The notes beneath the pieces were generated by a model. The model worked only from the letters and a program-made list of their open reading frames with translations. It was not told the DNA's origin and did not search any database. 64,000 nucleotides of DNA, from positions 62,001 through 126,000 of IMG/VR virus record IMGVR_UViG_3300037087_000760, one strand, 5' to 3'. The stretch's first letter is position 1. Each line of letters opens with the position of its first letter. Positions 22,080 to 62,100 of this stretch are shown piece after piece. The translations under genes were made by a program, and so were the position numbers.

Positions 22080-22233
22080 ATGTAATTTTCTTTTTTACTT
22101 ATATATAAACATTTTAAAGTCAAAAATAATTAAAAAACAATCAATTTTTTTTCCAATATGATGTTTTTTAATACAAATTGAAAAATTATACTCATAATAA
22201 ATGAATTAGTTTTCAAAAATAATATATAAGATC

Positions 22234-26935: not shown

Positions 26936-27064
26936 GGGGAAATAGCTCAGTTGGTAGAGCGCTAAAAATACTTATTCTGGTATTCTCGTTGTGAAACGAA
27001 GCGGTAGAATGAGTTACTTCGACTTCTAATCGAGAGGTCGTGGGTTCGAGTCCCACTTTCTCCG
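26936..27064 (+). ncRNA. tRNA/Y-RNA chimera: tRNA body (TCT loop) with extra arm between D and anticodon arms
   Basis: Normal acceptor, D and T arms; inserted hairpin with GTATTC/AGCGG internal loop and GTTACTTC motif shared with RNAs beside Ro60. Confidence 0.75.
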
Positions 27065-27295: not shown

Positions 27296-27423
27296 GGGGG
27301 GATAGCTCAGTTGGTAGAGCATTCGGCTGGGTAGAACAATCATCATAATACAGTGCACACAGATTTATGATTGAAAGGTTCTACCGAAACTGATGGTCGC
27401 TGGTTCGAATCCAGCTCCCCCCA
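27296..27423 (+). ncRNA. tRNA with long hairpin inserted in the anticodon loop (intron-like)
   Basis: Canonical D and T arms; GGTAGAAC...GTTCTACC hairpin in the loop. Confidence 0.7.
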
Positions 27424-27548: not shown

Positions 27549-27678
27549 GGGGGAATAGCTCAAAGGTAGAGTATAGATTCTGAGAACAAATATTCCCTTT
27601 TAAGTTAAGTGGCGATGTATTCAGTTACTTCGGTTGTCTTAAAAACAAAAGATACGGGTTCGAATCCCGTTTCCCCCG
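27549..27678 (+). ncRNA. tRNA/Y-RNA chimera (TAA loop) with inserted arm
   Basis: Same architecture as 26936-27064, with GTTACTTC motif. Confidence 0.7.
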
Positions 27679-28791: not shown

Positions 28792-28873
28792 ATGGAAGTA
28801 GTTTAAATGTAAAACACCATCCGGCCAAGGGTGGAGATGTACCGCGGTTTAGGTTCGAATCCTACCTTCCATG
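28792..28873 (+). tRNA. atypical tRNA (loop contains GCC/CCA; G73), possibly Trp-like
   Basis: Good acceptor, D and T arms; irregular anticodon loop. Confidence 0.5.
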
Positions 28874-28878
28874 CAAAA

Positions 28879-37197: not shown

Positions 37198-38817
37198 ATG
37201 TCAAAGTTTAGAAAATCAGCAGTAAAGAACAACATCAATGGTTTTTACGAAAACCAAGTTGAAAACTTCATGGGTGGAGTATCATTCAATATTAACCCAT
37301 TGGATACATTAAGAATTGTAGCCGCTAGCTCAATTTTTGGTGAACCATCTTATTACAGGGATGGATTTCAGTCAAAAGCCTATATCAAAAATATAGATCA
37401 ATTGAGTAATACTGAATTCTCGTTCATATTTAAAGATACCAATTCAACTCTTGATGTGTTTACAAACGCCATTAAAAATTCTCTGGACTTTGATTTCAAG
37501 GCAACACTTGAACTTGCTTCGCGTTTAAGGAATGAATTCAACATGAGATTAAATCCTTCTGTTATCTTCATTTATGCTTGTGTTCATCCTAAGAGAGTTG
37601 AATTCAATAAGGAAAATCCGGGGTTCATGAGAGAGATTGGTAAGAAAATCATTCAGCGTCCTGATGATATGACCAATCAATTTGAATACTATACCTTTTT
37701 AAAGGGATCAGACTTAGGTTTACCATCCATAGTAAAGAGATTGTGGGCTGATGTTCTGGGTGGACTTACACCTTATCAAATTAACAAATACAAGGGTAAA
37801 TTAATAATTGACCTTGTTCGTCTTAGCCACGCCAAATCAGAAACTATCAATGAGTTGATGAAAACTGGAACTGTAAAAGTTACAGATACCGAAAAAACTT
37901 GGGAAAATTTAAGATCTCAGGGAAAAACATGGAAAGAAATTCTTGACACAATCAAGATTCCTCACATGGCCCTTTTGAGAAATCTTCGTGGAATATTCAG
38001 TGAAATTCAGGATCTTGACCTTGCCAAAAAAGTTTGTTCACAACTTAAAGGTGGTGTATTATATGGGAAACAATTTCCATTCAGATACTTATCAGCCTAC
38101 CGTGCTATTTCATCGGAGGTTAATCATTACCAGTTATTAAAAGATACTTTACAGGAATGTATTGATATCTCAGTAGCCAATTATCCGAAATTAAAGGGTA
38201 AGACTATTTGTTTATCTGATAATTCAGGATCTGCTTGGGGAGCTGTTCCATCCGAATATGGTTCTGTTAAGATTGCTTCAATCTCTAACTTATCATCCAT
38301 TATCACAGCCTTACAATCAGACGAAGGATATGTGGGATTATTTGGTGATAGTCTGGTTATTAAATCAGTTTCTAAGAGAAATGGTATCCTTGAACAATCT
38401 GAACAATTGGATAAAATTGGACCAGACCAAGATGATACTGGTGGTGGTGGAACTGAAAATGGTATTTGGATGTTCTTCAGAGATTCTATCTCTAACAAAA
38501 CTTCTTATGATAATATTTTCATTTATTCTGACCAACAGGCTGGACATGGTGGATTATATGGGACAAGTGAGGGACAAGAGGAATATCGTGATTATTCACT
38601 CGATAGTTATATTGATGTATTAAAACTTATTGATGAATATCGTAAGAAAGTTAATTCGAAAGTTAACATTTTTTCTATTCAATGTGCCGGATATGATAAT
38701 TCAGTAATTCCAGAGAACTATTACAGAACTACTATTTTGGGGTCGTGGACCGGTAAGGAATCTGTATATGCCCAAGAGTTAATTAAAATATGGAATGATG
38801 TAGAAAAAAGGAGTTAA
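37198..38817 (+). CDS. Ro60/TROVE-domain RNA-binding protein (Rsr-like)
   Basis: ENFMGG, MALLRNLR, QFPFRYLSAY, vWA DNSGS and YSDQQ. Confidence 0.9.
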   Translation: MSKFRKSAVKNNINGFYENQVENFMGGVSFNINPLDTLRIVAASSIFGEPSYYRDGFQSKAYIKNIDQLSNTEFSFIFKDTNSTLDVFTNAIKNSLDFDFKATLELASRLRNEFNMRLNPSVIFIYACVHPKRVEFNKENPGFMREIGKKIIQRPDDMTNQFEYYTFLKGSDLGLPSIVKRLWADVLGGLTPYQINKYKGKLIIDLVRLSHAKSETINELMKTGTVKVTDTEKTWENLRSQGKTWKEILDTIKIPHMALLRNLRGIFSEIQDLDLAKKVCSQLKGGVLYGKQFPFRYLSAYRAISSEVNHYQLLKDTLQECIDISVANYPKLKGKTICLSDNSGSAWGAVPSEYGSVKIASISNLSSIITALQSDEGYVGLFGDSLVIKSVSKRNGILEQSEQLDKIGPDQDDTGGGGTENGIWMFFRDSISNKTSYDNIFIYSDQQAGHGGLYGTSEGQEEYRDYSLDSYIDVLKLIDEYRKKVNSKVNIFSIQCAGYDNSVIPENYYRTTILGSWTGKESVYAQELIKIWNDVEKRS

Positions 38818-41759: not shown

Positions 41760-42169
41760 AATACTACTAAACTTAATTTTTCTTTTTTTATCATTTTCTT
41801 CGCTTCGTCAAATGATAAATATTTAATCTCCTTTTTATCATAAGGCCAATGTGAATGATGAAATACACGATAACAACGATAATAAATTATATCTTCTTTT
41901 TTTAAATTCATATCACTTATATGAGGACTATATTGAATTAAAGTCCATAAATTATGTCTGATTAAACAATCTAAATGTGGGAAATATAATTTACAATATA
42001 AATCATATGGATGAATTTTTTCGAAACCATCTTTTTCTTCTTTACTTAATTCTATTTTTATAGATTCACTAAAGTCAATAGCACCAGAACATTCAAATTC
42101 TAATGAATCCTGAATTGGAATCCATAATTTTCCTTTTTCTGAATTATCTACAATTAATACATTTTTCAT
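41756..42169 (-). CDS. hypothetical protein
   Basis: ORF, ATGA coupling. Confidence 0.6.
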   Translation of the reverse strand: MKNVLIVDNSEKGKLWIPIQDSLEFECSGAIDFSESIKIELSKEEKDGFEKIHPYDLYCKLYFPHLDCLIRHNLWTLIQYSPHISDMNLKKEDIIYYRCYRVFHHSHWPYDKKEIKYLSFDEAKKMIKKEKLSLVVL

Positions 42170-42627
42170 CTTCCTAATGTTTTTTTCATATCCCTATCAC
42201 TATCTTTCTCTTTTATTTTATCTTTCTTATCATACTGCTTCTTACCTTTTGCTAAACCGATATTTAGTTTTATGATACCTTTATCATTAGTTTGTATAGC
42301 CAATGGGACTATTGTTATACCATCAATTTCAAATTGTTTTTGAAATTTCAATAATTGTTTTTTAGTCAATAAGAGTTTTTTATCTCTCTTTGGATCATGA
42401 GATACATATCCAGATTGTTCATATTCAGATATATGAAGATTCTTAATCCACATTTCACCATTGATGAAAAAACAATAAGAATCAGTGAAATTAACTTTCT
42501 GTTGTCTTACAGATTTTACCTCCGTTCCTGTTAAAACAACACCAGCTAATTCAGTATCAAGTATTTCGTAATTAAAATACGCTTTTTTATTTTTTAATAT
42601 CAGTTTATTATTGGTTTCTTTTTTCAT
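42166..42627 (-). CDS. smpB: SsrA-binding protein SmpB
   Basis: NKKAYFNY, AGVVLTGTEVKS, HDPKRDKKLLL, GKKQYDK. Confidence 0.95.
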   Translation of the reverse strand: MKKETNNKLILKNKKAYFNYEILDTELAGVVLTGTEVKSVRQQKVNFTDSYCFFINGEMWIKNLHISEYEQSGYVSHDPKRDKKLLLTKKQLLKFQKQFEIDGITIVPLAIQTNDKGIIKLNIGLAKGKKQYDKKDKIKEKDSDRDMKKTLGR

Positions 42628-43739: not shown

Positions 43740-44315
43740 TTATATCTTTTTTATAAATATAAGTTTCTTGTTTTCTCCTGTTGGTTTAACAAATAGTCCT
43801 TTTAATTCTTCTTTACTATTCCATTTCATTGATGATGATTTATGAGATGGAAGTCCACTCGTTTCTCCAATCAAAGTCCAATTATCGGCTTTGTAGACAG
43901 CTCCATTATTTCCACCAGCCACAAAAGTTAGAATGTATTTCAGATCATCATCATATTTCTTTTTCCATTCGATAGGGGCTAATCTTCTTAATTCCTTTAA
44001 TATCTGAGTTCCAGCGTTCTTTATATGTTTAATCATACAGAATCTCCAGTTATTAGAGAAAGTGTTGAAATTATCTTTATATTCGTTTTTAGACATATTT
44101 ACGAAGGTTAGAATATCTTTAGGTGGTGGATAAACAGAAGATCCAATTCCAATCATTCCTATCGGGTAAGGATTGTTTAGTTCATATATCAACCAATCTA
44201 TTCTACGACCAACTGAAGCATTACTTGCAACATAACTGTGATGTTGTTCTATAATGTTCTTAACAATTATTTTTTGCTCTTGTGAAACGACCAATTCTAA
44301 CTGTATTTTTGTCAT
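43740..44315 (-). CDS. DUF4338/DruA-like (Mom-like) protein
   Basis: HHSY..GRRIDWLI..NNWRF..LTFV..GAVYKADNW..IGET. Confidence 0.65.
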   Translation of the reverse strand: MTKIQLELVVSQEQKIIVKNIIEQHHSYVASNASVGRRIDWLIYELNNPYPIGMIGIGSSVYPPPKDILTFVNMSKNEYKDNFNTFSNNWRFCMIKHIKNAGTQILKELRRLAPIEWKKKYDDDLKYILTFVAGGNNGAVYKADNWTLIGETSGLPSHKSSSMKWNSKEELKGLFVKPTGENKKLIFIKKI

Positions 44316-45707: not shown

Positions 45708-46214
45708 ATGAAAAAGTTATTATTTATATTTTGTTTACTGTGTATGCCGATTGTTTTCGGTAGTTCGATGATGTCCCCGTCTCCATTATTTGAAACTTAT
45801 ATTGGTTCTACGAAGAACCAAATCATTGATGACTTAAGAGATAAATCTGAAAAATTTACTATTTCCGATAGAATACAAGTTAGGGTTGATAGTTTAAATC
45901 GTTGGTTGATTAATGACAATTATTACACTTACTTTTTCGATTTTGATGATGGAAGTAAATTAGCTGCCTCTTTTTCTAATCGTACAAATCTCTGTACAAA
46001 TTACTTATATGATTTTACAGATTGTGATTACAGAGATGATATTTTTCTTTTTAATGAAGCATTTGAAAGAATGGATAGTTTGACTTGGTATGAATCCGAT
46101 AGTAAGTCTGTCATAAAATTATTTATAACTGGTTATAGAGGTGGTTATTCTTTATATGCTTACAAGAAACAGTCTGATCCATTTATTGATATAAAAACAA
46201 CCATAAAAAAATAA
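45708..46214 (+). CDS. secreted hypothetical protein
   Basis: Signal-peptide-like MKKLLFIFCLLC. Confidence 0.6.
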   Translation: MKKLLFIFCLLCMPIVFGSSMMSPSPLFETYIGSTKNQIIDDLRDKSEKFTISDRIQVRVDSLNRWLINDNYYTYFFDFDDGSKLAASFSNRTNLCTNYLYDFTDCDYRDDIFLFNEAFERMDSLTWYESDSKSVIKLFITGYRGGYSLYAYKKQSDPFIDIKTTIKK

Positions 46215-46226
46215 TATATAAGATAC

Positions 46227-46383
46227 GGGAGATTACTCAATTTTGATTCATCAGTTTAAAGATACTGGTATGTTGGCTTGGAAGCAGCCAAGCATTTAAA
46301 GGGTGCGTAACGGCCCACCAATATTGGATGACAAAGGGAGAGCCCATCCACCGGTGGGAGTGGTTCGAAACCACAATCTTCCA
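46227..46383 (+). ncRNA. tRNA-scaffolded mimic of 23S rRNA H43-H44 (uL11-binding GTPase-associated centre)
   Basis: GGGAGATT/AATCTTCC-A acceptor stem, GTGG-TTCGAAA-CCAC T arm; 46266-46320 matches the rRNA 1051-1108 domain. Confidence 0.85.
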
Positions 46384-46434
46384 CAAAAGATAGCCCTAAA
46401 TAGGATCATCAGCAGGAGTGCACCCTGACCGATG

Positions 46435-47232
46435 TTAAAGAAATCTGTGTATTTCTCCGGCCATCTTTTTTTTAATTATTAATGATGATTTTCTTTTATA
46501 CTGGTCAAATTTCAATAATCTACTTTCTCGAATCGGTTTATCCTCAATTAATACATCCAAAGACTTGATATCGAGAAACTTGTTTATATTTTCTATGAAT
46601 TCTTGTTTATTTTCACATTTCCACAATTTAGCTTGTGTGGTCATCCATCTTGGTCTTTCTTCCCCTGTTTCCAGATAATTTCTTAATTCCTGTTTGAATT
46701 CAGATAATAACTTCTCTTTATCCCTGATCTTTAAATTATAATATTTATATCTCAACATTGACATAGCAAAATTCTGAACAAAAGATGATGATTTAATATC
46801 AAACATCTCCATTATTATTTTAGATGATTTAGATTCATAATTTTCTGATTTTTCTTCTTTTCTATTTCTCCATACTCCATCTGACCACAACCAAAGATCA
46901 CCATCAGATTCAATTTCAGATGTGCCGACATTAATATGAAAACTTCTGGGATCTACATTCATTTTCATTACATCTGGACCACTTCCATCTTTTTCCCCTC
47001 TATTTTTAGCGTACCAATAAACGGAATCTCCATATTGACTTTTACTGGTATTTGAAAAGAAAAAACCATCTCTAAATAATCCAGAATTACGAATTTCAGA
47101 AGCACCTTTTTTACTTGTACCGTGATATAAAGTAACATAATTAAAACTGAAATCTAATCTAACACCGATTGACTTAGCATCGTCCTTTAAATCTTGGATA
47201 ACTTCTCCGTATGTTGGTTCTCTATCTTCCAT
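46435..47232 (-). CDS. ADP-ribosyltransferase-like protein
   Basis: VTLYHGT...GFFFS. Confidence 0.5.
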   Translation of the reverse strand: MEDREPTYGEVIQDLKDDAKSIGVRLDFSFNYVTLYHGTSKKGASEIRNSGLFRDGFFFSNTSKSQYGDSVYWYAKNRGEKDGSGPDVMKMNVDPRSFHINVGTSEIESDGDLWLWSDGVWRNRKEEKSENYESKSSKIIMEMFDIKSSSFVQNFAMSMLRYKYYNLKIRDKEKLLSEFKQELRNYLETGEERPRWMTTQAKLWKCENKQEFIENINKFLDIKSLDVLIEDKPIRESRLLKFDQYKRKSSLIIKKKMAGEIHRFL

Positions 47233-47666
47233 TATCTTTATATATTATTTTTTACTAAAACTTTTTAGGACATTTCTATTACAATATATAAAAAGAATAA
47301 TAAGAGATATGAAATATTTATTACTGACATTGATTTATATTATAAAAGATTGGGATCTATCGTTGGATGAATTTAATCCGATTGGTAAATTTCTTTGGTG
47401 GATACCAAATTTTCTTAATAATATTATTCGAGTATTTTTTAAGTTACTGGTATCACCCATCATATTTTTATGGATATTATTCTTTGAAAAGAATAAAAGT
47501 CTTATATTAAGATTTTTTGTTTACTGGAAAGATTCTCTTAATGAAGTAATAAATGGGATAAGTCAAGTAAAGGAATAGTATTCCAATTACACTTAAAAGA
47601 AGAAATATTAGAAAACAAAATAAATCTTTCATACAATCTTATATATTAAAATAAAGTGATTTATTG

Positions 47667-48710
47667 ATGAATCTTAATAAAGACTATTACTCAATACTTG
47701 GAATAAAAAAGGAATCCAATTCCGACCAAATTAAGACAGCATTCCGAAAGTTAGCCAAAGAACATCACCCTGATGTCAAAGAGGGTAAAGACGAAACAAA
47801 AATAAAAGAAATCAATGAGGCATATACTGTCTTAAATGATAATACATCTCGTAGGCAATACGATCAACAAAGTAAATACGGGTCTAATTATAATCCAGTA
47901 ATGAATCCTTATACATTCTTTGGAAATTTCGGAAATTTCGAACAGGATTTTGATATATTTAGTGGACCAGCAGGAGTATGGTCAAATAATTTAAATAATG
48001 ATATCTTTAATTCATTTTTCAAAAGAGAAGAATTTCGTGAAAATCTTGATATAACTTATCATACTGATATTACCTTAAAGGATATTTACAATAATAATTT
48101 CGTTAATATAAAATACAAAAGATACATTAAATGTGATACTTGTGATTGGACAGGTTTTGACTTTGATGGTGAATCATTCGAATGTGATGCTTGTGATGGA
48201 CATGGCCATGTTAAAGGAAGAAGTTGTGAATTATGTAGAGGTACTGGAAAAATATTTACTGGAACTTGTAAAAAATGTTCTGGTATTAAAGTAATTTTGA
48301 AAGATGAAGAATTTGCTTTAAGTAATGTTTATGGTATTCGTGAAAGTTTCGATAAGTATCTCAAGGAATACGGACATCAATCTAAGCATTATAGAGGTAA
48401 AATTGGTACTATGTTTGTCAAGGTAAATACTATAATGGACAATCGCTATCAAATTCTACCAAGTAAAGATTTACTTTTTAAATTGGATCTTCATTATCGT
48501 TATGCTATTGATGGATATGAATTCGAATATGAACATTTGGATGGAAAAAAGTATAAGATAAAAATACCATCAAAAACAAAGGATGGAGATCTATTAAAGA
48601 TTGATGGTAAAGGACTTATAATAGATTCCACATTAAAAAGGGCTGATTTATTATTCAAGGTTAACATAGTGGTAGACTATAACTTAGTAGAATTAGCTAA
48701 AAAAGAATAG
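47667..48710 (+). CDS. dnaJ: DnaJ chaperone
   Basis: DYYSILG, HPD motif, CxxCxGxG repeats. Confidence 0.9.
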   Translation: MNLNKDYYSILGIKKESNSDQIKTAFRKLAKEHHPDVKEGKDETKIKEINEAYTVLNDNTSRRQYDQQSKYGSNYNPVMNPYTFFGNFGNFEQDFDIFSGPAGVWSNNLNNDIFNSFFKREEFRENLDITYHTDITLKDIYNNNFVNIKYKRYIKCDTCDWTGFDFDGESFECDACDGHGHVKGRSCELCRGTGKIFTGTCKKCSGIKVILKDEEFALSNVYGIRESFDKYLKEYGHQSKHYRGKIGTMFVKVNTIMDNRYQILPSKDLLFKLDLHYRYAIDGYEFEYEHLDGKKYKIKIPSKTKDGDLLKIDGKGLIIDSTLKRADLLFKVNIVVDYNLVELAKKE

Positions 48711-59198: not shown

Positions 59199-62100
59199 AT
59201 GATAAAAAGAGTTGCAAACTGTGGAGATATCCATATACCGAAAAAACTTGACAGACATTCAGAATATAGAGAAGTCTTTGAAAATTTTTACCAAAAACTT
59301 AAAGAACAAAAACCAGATAGAATCGTCATCACTGGTGACTTATATAACGATTTTATAGATCTTGAAAATGAAGCCCTTATCCTTGTCGGAGAATTCCTTA
59401 CTAAGTTAGCTTCTATCTCGAAAGTCATAATTATCAAAGGAAATCATGATGTTAGAAAGAAAAATCGTAATCGTGTAGATACGATTGAAACAGCGGTTAC
59501 TATGTTAAGTAACCCCAGCATCACCTATTACAAAAAATCAGGATTTTATCCTGATGAAAATGTAGTTTGGGTAGTATGGGATTATCTTGATAAGATAAAT
59601 CCTTGGAAAGCTTTTCCGACAAAGAAAGATCCTGATTTAATTTATATTGACCTTTATCATAATCCTATAATTGATGTTAAGCTTTGTAATGGTTTTATAT
59701 TTCCTAAGAAGAGTGTACCCAATATAACCGATTTAAAGGGTGATATCTCTATGTTGAGTGATATTCACTTACATCAATCTTTTGTTAAGGGAACAAAAGC
59801 CTATACATCAAGTATGATTCAACAACATTTCGGAGAATCATCATCTCCAAAAGAACATGGTTATCTTTTATGGAATATACCTAATAAATCTTTTGAGTTT
59901 ATTCCAATTCCAAATAATTATGCTTTTGTAAATTTCAAACTTACTTCACCTATCGATTATGATAATCTACAAATGTCAAATCCAGATGTAGTTCAAAATA
60001 ATAAATTCAGAGTTATCTGGACTGATTATTCATCTAATATAAATCGAGAAAATGAATTCAAAATAAAGAAATATTTAAGAGATAAATATTCAGCGTTTAA
60101 TGTAGAAGATATTCGATTCCAGAAATTTCCATTTCATACTAAGATAGAAGATTCAAAATTAATTTCTGAAATCATCAATATCAATGATAAACAGGTTCAA
60201 CAAGATGTTATTCGTGAATACTTAACCATCAATCATTATGATGAGAAATTTATTGAAGAAATTATAAAAATTGATGATATTATTAATGGTAGAATTGTAA
60301 CAAACGAAGCCACTAATATTGTTTGGAATATAGATAAAATAACATTCAGTAATTTCAAATCTTATGGAGATGATAATGTTCTTGATTTACACGACACAAA
60401 CGGATTGATTCAGATTAATGGTATTAATCAATATGGAAAAACTACCATTCTTGATGTTATTTGTTATGCTTTATATGGTAAAACAATAGCCACTACTAAA
60501 AGAGAAAAGAACGGAGAAAATCGTTATATTAATAACAAACGAGATTTGAATTTTTGTGAGGCTACCGTAATAATTGATATCAACGGTGAAAAATTTTGTA
60601 TTAAAAGAAGAACAGATAGAGAAGTAAATTCTCGTGGGGAAATTACTAAATGTTCAACAGTTGTTAATTATCATGAGGGTGATCACATTTCACAAGATCC
60701 AGAAGATAGTTCAAATAAAAATGATGAAACTGCTAAAAGAACTCAGAAGTTAATTCAGGAAGTATTGGGTGATTTTGATGACTTTGTGAGATTGGCACTT
60801 ACCAACGCTGACAATTTAAATCAATTATTATCAATTGAAAGAAGTGTATTCATTGATAGTGTGGTTAAGGATGCTGGATATGAAATTTTTGAAAAGAAAC
60901 TTATCGAATTTAAAAATTACAAAAAAGAATTAAATCTTGAAAAAATAGTTTTAGATCCAGTTTCAGTTGATGAACAAATCAGGGATCAACAAGAAAAAAT
61001 TCAAGGGTCTGAGAATGAGGAATATGAAATAAACCAAAGTATAACTGAAGTTGAAGAAAGAATAACCAAAGGTCTTGCTATTCAGGAAAAACTCACTTTA
61101 AAAGTTCATAAAATAGATGATGATATTATGAATTTGAATGTTGAAAATGTAAATTATGATATTGAAACAGACAAGAAAAAAACAACAGAGAATAATGAAA
61201 CCATAAAGAGTTATAAAGAAATAATAGATGGTTTACCAAGTGAATTTGATTATAGAAAATTCAATGATGATGTAGAAAATAAATCCAAGTTTGAAAAAGA
61301 ACATCACAAGAAAGAACTGGAGAATGTTGAATGGGGTAGAAAGATGGATGAAAACAACTTCAATATTGATAATGTAGATGTTAAAATAGAAATGGTTAAA
61401 ACAAAGGTAATAAATGAGAAGAAAAATGAAATCAGTAAATTAACCAATTCTATAAATACAGAAAGAAATAAGATAAGTAGTATTGTTAATGAAAAAATAA
61501 GAGAAATTGATAAAAAGGTCACAAAGATATACAATGAAATAGGAAAATTGGATAATGAACTTTCACAATTAAAATCTGATGGGATTAAAATTTCAGGCGA
61601 AATCAAATCTTTTGAAAATGCTAAAAATGGAGATAAGGAAAATTGTCCTACCTGTGGCCGTCCTATGGAAGATTGTGATGAAAATCATCTCAACAAACTT
61701 ATCGAAGAAAAAAGAAAGAAATTTCAAGAAATTTCAGAAGAAGCAAAACCAAAATTAACCAAAAAGAAAGAACTTCTAATAGAAGTTGATACATTAAATA
61801 ATTCCAAAAATGATCTATCATCTGATTATTATTTAAAAGAAAACATCATAGAGGTTAAATTGGTATATCAAAATATTGATACTATTGGTGTCCAGATAAA
61901 GAAGATTGAAGAAGAAATTGATAATTTCGACATTAATGAGATTAAAGATGATGTTGATAAAATCATGTTGGATAAAGAAAAGGCTGAGAAAGAAAATAGG
62001 GAATATAAGGATATCATCAACGAAAACACCGTTATTATAAGAAAATTAAAAGTGGACATTGATGAATTGGAGAAAGTTATTGCTGAAAAGAATCTCATTA

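Follow-up and report, generated by a model that had tools for sequence, protein, structure and literature searches.

A predicted tRNA-like phage RNA capped by a copy of the ribosomal GTPase-associated center, and a wider family of phage copies of this domain

Introduction

Why would a bacteriophage carry one small domain of 23S ribosomal RNA (rRNA) on an RNA of its own? The question is raised by a 64,000-nucleotide (nt) stretch of IMG/VR virus record IMGVR_UViG_3300037087_000760 (positions 62,001 to 126,000 of the record; hereafter, the window). An earlier note on this DNA had described a 157-nt element at 46227-46383 as a transfer RNA (tRNA) scaffold displaying a copy of helices H43-H44 of 23S rRNA, the GTPase-associated center (GAC). 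Ribosomal protein uL11 binds the 58-nt GAC domain, and activation of RelA needs uL11. The note had proposed a decoy that titrates uL11 and stalk proteins, RelA, or a defence enzyme that targets the GAC. Here we analyze the GAC copy, the tRNA-like frame that presents it and the copies of the same domain in other phages, and weigh what such an RNA might do.

Results

The GAC copy

The 55-nt string quoted in the earlier note lies exactly as given at the position below (all coordinates without a locus name are those of the window), and its reading as a copy of H43-H44 holds up.

46266..46320, plus strand: copy of the 23S rRNA GAC (H43-H44, E. coli 1053-1106), at the tip of a long arm; Rfam match

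These nucleotides align to positions 1094-1147 of the Rfam model LSU_rRNA_bacteria (RF02541), which are H43-H44, with 35.1 bits and E 3.3e-9, a local E-value from a permissive cmscan restricted to 421 nt (46100-46520), where this is the one strong match. All modelled pairs are standard, none being flagged as non-standard in the alignment, and the H43 stem-loop, the 1082-1086 pair, the H44 hairpin and the closing stem are all in register. Over E. coli positions 1053-1106, 41 of 55 positions (74.5%) are identical to Salmonella 23S rRNA, an enterobacterial reference that is the same as E. coli across the GAC region. The H43 19-mer GTTGGCTTRGAAGCAGCCA occurs once in the window and in none of 100 shuffles, with up to three mismatches tolerated.

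Departures from rRNA comprise G1067, A1088G, A1098G, U1101C and one extra nucleotide after 1077/1078. The earlier note had called the differences compensatory, and for the closing pairs this stands, as they are altered on both sides (C-G to U-A and A-U to G-C). For the 'GGG..CCC' change it does not. In rRNA, U1060-A1088 is a tertiary pair, and changes there weaken the tertiary fold. The 'GGG..CCC' change includes A1088G, which removes the A of this pair, one that all 53 aligned phage relatives retain, and so it is not simply compensatory.

No rRNA gene is found in the window at the Rfam gathering score, and the flanks of the copy are not rRNA, as the earlier note had said. Moreover, six further, independent assemblies of this phage (ENA, JGI, Logan) match the region without a difference, which excludes a chimeric join with host rDNA, a doubt that the note itself had raised.

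The tRNA-like frame

The GAC copy caps one arm of a larger RNA, whose parts and immediate flanks are as follows.

46227..46383, plus strand: whole 157-nt tRNA-like four-way-junction RNA; it folds, and it has homologues with the same architecture
46212..46220, plus strand: promoter-like motif TAATATATA, 6 nt upstream of the first G (G46227)
46227..46234, plus strand: 5' strand of the acceptor stem, GGGAGAUU, pairing with 46375-46382
46236..46340, plus strand: long arm (RNA positions 10-114) in the constrained fold, with the GAC copy at its tip
46343..46358, plus strand: hairpin CCCAUC-CACC-GGUGGG at the anticodon-arm position, with a 4-nt loop and no 7-nt anticodon loop
46360..46374, plus strand: T arm GUGG-UUCGAAA-CCAC, with a canonical T loop
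46375..46384, plus strand: 3' strand of the acceptor stem, AAUCUUCC, with discriminator A (46383) and C (46384), then AAAAG
46385..46470, plus strand: trailer with a U run at its end after a long-range stem, a weak terminator candidate

The free fold of the 157-nt RNA has z = -2.97 against shuffles. With the GAC and the acceptor and T stems imposed (-27.0 kcal/mol), the RNA forms a four-way junction of acceptor stem, long arm, short hairpin and T arm. The acceptor stem has 8 base pairs (bp), the third being a G-U wobble, is followed by the unpaired discriminator A and stacks on a 4-bp T stem. In this form we recover the alanine-type acceptor stem (G3-U, A73) and T arm that had been read from the letters, and the placing of a long, GAC-capped arm at the D-arm position likewise agrees with the folds of the window RNA and its homologues. 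Partway along, the long arm opens into an internal loop, UCAUCAG(U/A)UUAAAGAU opposite AUUGGAUGAC. The T arm is the sole copy of a GGTTCGAANCC-type T-loop motif in the window outside three tRNA regions.

Is this simply a tRNA, or a transfer-messenger RNA (tmRNA)? With the tRNA family (RF00005) it shares an acceptor stem stacked on a T arm, a UUCRANY-type T loop (UUCGAAA), A73 and a tRNA-type trailer; it has neither a D arm with G18 G19 nor a 7-nt loop on an anticodon arm. Neither ARAGORN nor Rfam calls a tRNA here, also when E-values up to 10 are admitted for the local region. We also rejected a tRNA carrying an intron or insert, as ARAGORN is negative at default thresholds, intron modes included, and about 4,700 internal deletions were tried without ARAGORN calling a tRNA in any of them. 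With tmRNA (RF00023 and relatives) the RNA shares the G3-U70 alanine identity and a T arm. Its 5' segment pairs into the long arm, and there is no unpaired D-loop analogue; pseudoknots and a tag reading frame are lacking too, and no tmRNA is detected at this RNA by ARAGORN -m at lowered thresholds or by Rfam.

Homologues of the frame were reached only through contigs encoding homologues of a neighbouring 265-aa protein, two of which carry the RNA at the same place.

L197:4283-4403: frame homologue, 121 nt
L199:3350-3498: frame homologue, 149 nt, identical to L200:1010-1158

Folded alone, both adopt the architecture of the window RNA's constrained fold, with the long arm starting 1 nt past the acceptor stem. 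In L199 the acceptor stem is GGGGUGAA/UUCACUCC, in which five of the eight pairs are altered on both sides relative to the window while G3-U, the discriminator A and the following C are retained; G3-U is present in all three RNAs. The helices CUC/GAG, UUUUG/CAAAG and UCAUC/GAUGA of the long arm are kept in L197 and L199 with compensatory or wobble changes, such as CUC/GAG to CUUC/GAAG and UUUUG/CAAAG to AUUG/CAAU, and the most conserved stretch across the three RNAs is the internal loop with its opposite strand. The hairpin at the anticodon position has the same sequence in L197 and reads ACACU-GUUGUUAUA-AGUGU at the same place in L199. The T loop is UUCGAGA in L197 and a degenerate CUCGUAA in L199.

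DNA-pattern searches for further frames returned only the window's own contig and chance matches in coding sequence from IMG/VR, and one GAC locus of the split type (see below) from a metagenome scan. No close relatives of the window were found among GenBank phages. In a relative, L215, the place after the homologous neighbour gene that the RNA occupies in the window is taken by an open reading frame (ORF) with a weak ART-PolyVal match (631-1128).

The promoter-like motif TAATATATA occurs 16 times in the window against 4.2 expected, a four-fold enrichment, and in at least eight cases it stands 4-10 nt ahead of the ATG of an ORF (for example at 22220, 33831, 47247 and 47648). Probably it acts as a promoter, producing mRNAs with little or no leader. 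Motifs of the same class lie 4-6 nt before G1 in L197 and L199, so that one precedes each of the three RNAs, in keeping with the promoter motif pointed out in the earlier note. At the other end, the A-C-AAAAG trailer is arranged as in all 32 tRNA genes of the phage, where N73 is followed by C and an A-rich stretch and CCA is not encoded. In L197 a clean hairpin and U run, a terminator, lie right past the 3' end of the RNA; for the window's own trailer, 46385-46470, the fold is not significant (z = -1.42) and a terminator scan was negative. The next gene, at 46435-47232 on the minus strand, is convergent.

Homologues with compensatory changes, a shared promoter-like motif and the L197 terminator argue that the frame is a real, conserved and independently transcribed RNA. 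Judged from sequence, this huge phage has at 46227-46383 a small RNA gene in its own right, with a promoter-like motif and a tRNA-gene-type trailer.

The wider phage family

We find the GAC domain in more than 100 other phage and prophage loci. The H43 19-mer alone occurs in at least 119 stretches of IMG/VR contigs, only one of which resembles true rRNA, and an Rfam scan of 37 loci found no rRNA gene or other Rfam family at the GAC sites. (Loci L001-L127 are from IMG/VR, except that L120-L123 are GAP32, Aeromonas 4_4572, XacN1 and pf16; L128-L196 are bacterial and metagenome-assembled-genome (MAG) contigs.) Cultured phages with the core infect enterobacterial hosts (Cronobacter GAP32, Pectobacterium CBB, Serratia BF, Yersinia fHe-Yen9-04 and the Erwinia pEa_SNUABM phages), Xanthomonas (XacN1, XbC2, XaC1), Pseudomonas (pf16, Astolliot, Milchi, UNO-G1W1), Aeromonas (4_4572), Paenibacillus (Pd_22F) and Vibrio. 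In these phages the cores lie nearly all in unannotated gaps, with two beneath ORFs annotated as hypothetical proteins. Phage T4 is absent among the 53 phage records that match the core. The 3' half-motif is also found in 69 bacterial or MAG contigs of many phyla, in 34 of which the 5' half lies within 700 nt, and some of these contigs hold further compensatory changes in H43.

Most members are split: a variable insert of 45-445 nt sits on a helix exactly between U1090 and G1091. The 5' part consists of a long closing stem followed by GG-R-N GUUGGCUURGAAGCAGCCA N-C-N-UYUAARGAGU, and the 3' part of the insert helix, UUUGGCGUARYAGCACAC and the returning strand of the closing stem. A further insert, after 1077, is present in some members. 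We rejected a group I intron as the identity of the inserts, as there was no Rfam Intron_gpI match in 37 loci, 10 of the 53 inserts contain an RCUC motif (8.4 in shuffles), with no internal-guide signal, and a median of 130 nt is too short.

Across 53 aligned members, pairs change in concert. Pair 1057-1081 is A-U in 46 and C-G in 6; 1058-1080 is U-A in 28, G-C in 15 and A-U in 9; 1082-1086 is U-A in 30, C-G in 18 and A-U in 3; and 1054-1105 is G-C in 43 and A-U in 9. The closing stem covaries over about eight pairs, as does the base of the insert helix. At the same time U1060 and A1088 are invariant and G1093-A1098 is kept. Because pairs covary while these nucleotides are held, the alignment argues that the rRNA fold itself is under purifying selection in the phage family. 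Covariation, which the earlier note had named as a check, is found at two levels, in this alignment and in the five acceptor pairs changed on both sides around a kept G3-U.

Where do these elements sit? At 61 of 106 distinct sites a tRNA gene lies within 1 kb, always on the same strand, and no neighbour protein recurs except GIY-YIG/HNH homing endonucleases. The lack of a conserved neighbour protein, together with hosts of many phyla, fits a universal host partner.

The window copy contains the exact 19-mer and the covarying pairs of the family core, with GGGU where the family has GAGU. It is compact, lacking the U1090/G1091 insert helix and the UUUGGCGUARYAGCACAC block of the split type; its closing stem runs on into the long arm, and it has its own tRNA-like frame, the nearest tRNA gene being 10 kb off. 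Such compact copies are rare (L047/L106/L124, L119 and L025). The 1-nt insertion after 1077/1078 is common to the window copy and the compact phage copies and absent from rRNA, which points to common descent within phages and not to fresh capture from a host.

Several members have features of their own. In L047 (4367-4396, minus strand), L106 (1777-1806, plus strand) and L124 (3143-3172, plus strand), a compact copy almost identical to rRNA is followed after 15-20 nt by a Shine-Dalgarno sequence and the ATG of a small hydrophobic ORF (about 55 aa); these copies may represent a cis-regulatory use of the GAC mimic. In L115 (1490-2097) a split element directly precedes a tmRNA (Rfam 43 bits, below gathering score), and in L018 (685-1176) a GOLLD RNA shares the tRNA region with a GAC element. 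In L126 (1520-1680, minus strand) the insert of a split GAC holds an acceptor-like stem and a T-arm-like hairpin (GGGGGUUCAAUUCCCCU), a tRNA minihelix within a GAC clamp and so the inverse of the window RNA.

Rfam 15 has no family for the phage GAC copies, and full-text literature searches, which may miss papers in subscription journals, found no description of one.

Genomic context in the window

Four protein-coding genes in the neighbourhood deserve a place beside the RNA.

42166..42627, minus strand: full-length phage SmpB gene (Pfam SmpB, E 8.6e-53), 3.6 kb from the RNA
37198..38817, plus strand: gene for a TROVE (Ro60/Rsr-like) protein (Pfam TROVE, E 2.4e-7, above gathering score), 7.4 kb away
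43740-44315, minus strand: DruA-like ORF (Druantia defence protein family)
47664-48710: DnaJ gene

An M16 peptidase and a NUDIX protein are also encoded in the window, and the 265-aa neighbour protein is found in identical form on contigs of up to 736 kb. Over the 64 kb, ARAGORN and Rfam find no tmRNA and Rfam calls no Y RNA. In huge phages tmRNA, SmpB and ribosomal proteins, L7/L12 among them, are already known (PMC7162821).

The phage's tRNA genes are themselves unusual. Three of them (26936-27064, 27296-27423 and 27549-27678; Rfam 47-57 bits) bear extra hairpins of 54-74 nt, one being a tRNA-Arg(UCU) with the added arm between the D and anticodon arms and the other two having an insert in the anticodon arm; ARAGORN misses or truncates all three. 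A tRNA-like gene at 28792-28874 (plus strand) is given a four-base anticodon (gcca) by ARAGORN, and with 83-87 nt many of the window's class-I tRNAs exceed the usual length.

Discussion

What kind of RNA is this? We rate the phage GAC-copy RNAs as a new class, outside the tRNA, tmRNA, Y RNA, GOLLD/ROOL and ribosomal-protein leader families, for each of which defining features were looked for and not found. The identities GOLLD, ROOL, Y RNA and ribosomal-protein leader were each rejected, with no Rfam match at these sites. The nearest relative is the 23S GAC itself (E. coli 1051-1108, the uL11/thiostrepton site), with which the window copy shares its secondary structure and a near-identical H43 loop; the former sits in rRNA, whereas the latter is free-standing on a tRNA-like frame. 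Leaders of ribosomal-protein operons, such as the L10(L12)4-binding rplJL leader and those with L1, L20, S8 and S15 sites, are likewise extra-ribosomal mimics of an rRNA protein site, but they are cis-acting parts of cellular mRNAs with partial mimicry, whereas the window RNA is separate, phage-encoded, apparently stable and bears a near-complete domain. To our knowledge, no such leader copies the uL11 site.

Among tRNA-like RNAs, the tRNA-like domain of tmRNA, including reduced mitochondrial tmRNAs without a tag frame, shares with the window RNA G3-U70, A73, a T arm, a long helix leaving the core and an SmpB gene nearby, but its stems are of 7 and 5 bp against 8 and 4 bp here, and the window RNA is without the D-loop analogue, pseudoknots and tag ORF. 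Bacterial Y RNAs (YrlA, bound by Ro60/Rsr) are also tRNA-like non-coding RNAs near a TROVE-domain gene. In YrlA the Ro-binding stem is built from both ends of the molecule, with the tRNA-like module inside; the ends of the window RNA pair as its acceptor stem, and there is no Rfam Y RNA match. Phage T4 encodes RNAs C and D, stable RNAs of unknown role among its tRNA genes, and these offer a comparison as stable RNAs amid phage tRNA genes. Engineered 'tRNA scaffolds' likewise use a tRNA-type frame to give processing and stability to a displayed RNA domain; unlike them, the window frame is natural, lacks D and anticodon arms and carries its payload at the D-arm position. The split family resembles GOLLD and ROOL (PMC5737381) in its phage and prophage origin, its place in tRNA regions and its variable, ornate inserts, but its core is a recognisable rRNA domain, and the window RNA is small.

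Taken as a whole, the family suggests that phages may make decoys of the ribosomal GAC. For the window RNA we favour, tentatively and at less than even confidence, a trans-acting decoy or sponge of uL11 and the stalk acting through the GAC copy. Through the acceptor/T minihelix the RNA would gain stability and have its ends matured like those of a tRNA (RNase P, 3' trimming, CCA addition), and G3-U/A73 may also permit charging by alanyl-tRNA synthetase. The GAC copy would bind the usual recognisers of this rRNA domain, in the first place uL11, possibly with uL10/bL12; free stalk-base protein would be withdrawn by the RNA, and GAC-dependent host events, such as RelA activation, would be altered. 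A broader version is somewhat more doubtful still: that many phage lineages encode trans-acting GAC copies, matured alongside tRNAs, which capture stalk-base proteins or divert factors or toxins aimed at the GAC, the window version being mounted on an alanine-type scaffold and maybe handled by the phage SmpB.

Several observations weigh against the uL11 decoy. At 1088, where all 53 family members have A, the window copy has G, and at 1098, an A in 51 of the 53, it has G as well, so that one partner is changed in each of the tertiary pairs U1060-A1088 and sheared G1093-A1098; it also has the extra nucleotide after 1077/1078. The unconstrained minimum-energy fold (-50.7 kcal/mol) disrupts the GAC in favour of the hairpins GCAUUU/GGGUGC and CCCACC/GGUGGG. 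Nearest-neighbour energies are known to underrate the GAC tertiary domain. Nor is the tip constant among the closest relatives. In L197 a 7-bp stem with a plain 12-nt loop replaces the GAC, and since CUGGUAU, the start of the GAC in the window RNA, is retained, the GAC was likely deleted there; L199/L200 keeps AUGG/CCAU, UUAAG, GAGU and a 2-bp H44 and is without the loops that bear A1067 and A1095; and several other relatives are without the RNA altogether. A closest frame homologue without the GAC, a second with a reduced one and A1088G in the window copy all weaken the case for a decoy. Finally, uL11 in assembled ribosomes may be inaccessible to it.

Some of these observations also feed an alternative that we consider unlikely but the most serious of those below, in which the functional unit is the tRNA-like frame, its partner recognising the acceptor/T minihelix or the internal loop, and the GAC is an exchangeable or decaying self-folding cap. 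The frame and internal loop are conserved in three homologues while the tip ranges from a full through a reduced GAC to a simple loop; at A1088 the window copy departs from its relatives; in the family the GAC clamps variable inserts of 45-445 nt, much like a folding scaffold; and the same phage has tRNA genes with extra hairpin arms. On the other hand, the GAC is the only sizeable payload of the window RNA, and the family keeps rRNA-identical loop nucleotides and tertiary pairs over hosts of many phyla, a pattern easier to reconcile with a shared external partner than with a scaffold and nothing more. The frame could instead point to SmpB, the RNA being a tmRNA-like, alanine-accepting molecule without a tag frame that enters stalled ribosomes with SmpB and EF-Tu, the GAC arm being accessory. 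We hold this to be quite improbable. It draws on the SmpB gene 3.6 kb off in a 64-kb window with no tmRNA and no other non-tRNA T arm, on the conservation of G3-U70 and A73 while other acceptor pairs covary, on the L115 element directly before a tmRNA and on the huge phages that carry both tmRNA and SmpB (PMC7162821). Both ARAGORN in tmRNA mode at lowered thresholds and Rfam are negative, however; the 5' segment pairs into the long arm, with covariation, leaving no unpaired D-loop analogue; pseudoknots and a credible tag ORF are absent; and the T loop of L199 is degenerate. Moreover, 64 kb were examined of a contig of at least 211 kb, and a normal tmRNA may therefore lie elsewhere.

A different target for the GAC copy itself has also to be considered, and we judge it more improbable again: that the RNA is a decoy substrate for some GAC-attacking agent of the host or of a competitor, for instance an enzyme (RNA ADP-ribosyltransferase or nuclease) or a small molecule (thiopeptide). 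Genes in phage tRNA regions are thought to counter RNA-targeting defences, and phage tRNA clusters that buffer attacks on host tRNAs offer a parallel. With 61 of 106 sites within 1 kb of a co-oriented tRNA gene, the family stands among such presumed counter-defence genes, and it has no conserved protein partner. We know of no anti-phage system that targets the GAC, which tells against this proposal, as do the loss of the tip in close homologues and, for thiopeptide binding, G1067 in the window copy and R1067 in the family. A bacterial toxin that modifies the GAC is documented in Tre23, which ADP-ribosylates H44 at nucleotides 1095-1098 (PMC8661411), but it acts on rRNA inside ribosomes. Two further proposals seem to us very improbable, and to the same degree. 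One takes the copy for captured host rDNA left as a functionless relic, or for an artefact of assembly, as might be suspected of a short rRNA-like stretch in a metagenomic contig whose tip is lost or decayed in relatives; against it stand the identical region in six other assemblies, the non-rRNA flanks, the compensatory closing pairs, a 1-nt insertion shared with compact phage copies and not with rRNA, and the precise embedding in a covarying arm behind a promoter-like motif of its own. The other makes the RNA a cis-regulatory leader, through which a ribosomal protein would be sensed and a gene downstream controlled. The L047, L106 and L124 copies, 15-20 nt upstream of a Shine-Dalgarno sequence and small ORF, lend it some colour, but the next gene in the window is convergent and the RNA has a tRNA-like 3' end.

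If the decoy interpretation of the window RNA and its family is true, these RNAs would constitute a new type of viral RNA decoy, one directed at the translation machinery. Should they bind uL11 and the stalk, phages would tamper with the ribosomal factor-binding centre and with stringent-response signalling by RNA mimicry and not by proteins. As the family is present in cultured jumbo phages (GAP32, CBB, XacN1, pf16 and others), the idea is directly testable with laboratory hosts. For RNA structure work, the GAC family is also a source of naturally occurring variants of a textbook tertiary fold, which carry inserts at two defined positions, and in the window RNA the engineered 'tRNA scaffold' has its equivalent in nature. 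Should the decoy idea prove wrong, a widespread class of structured phage RNA that is missing from Rfam would still merit cataloguing.

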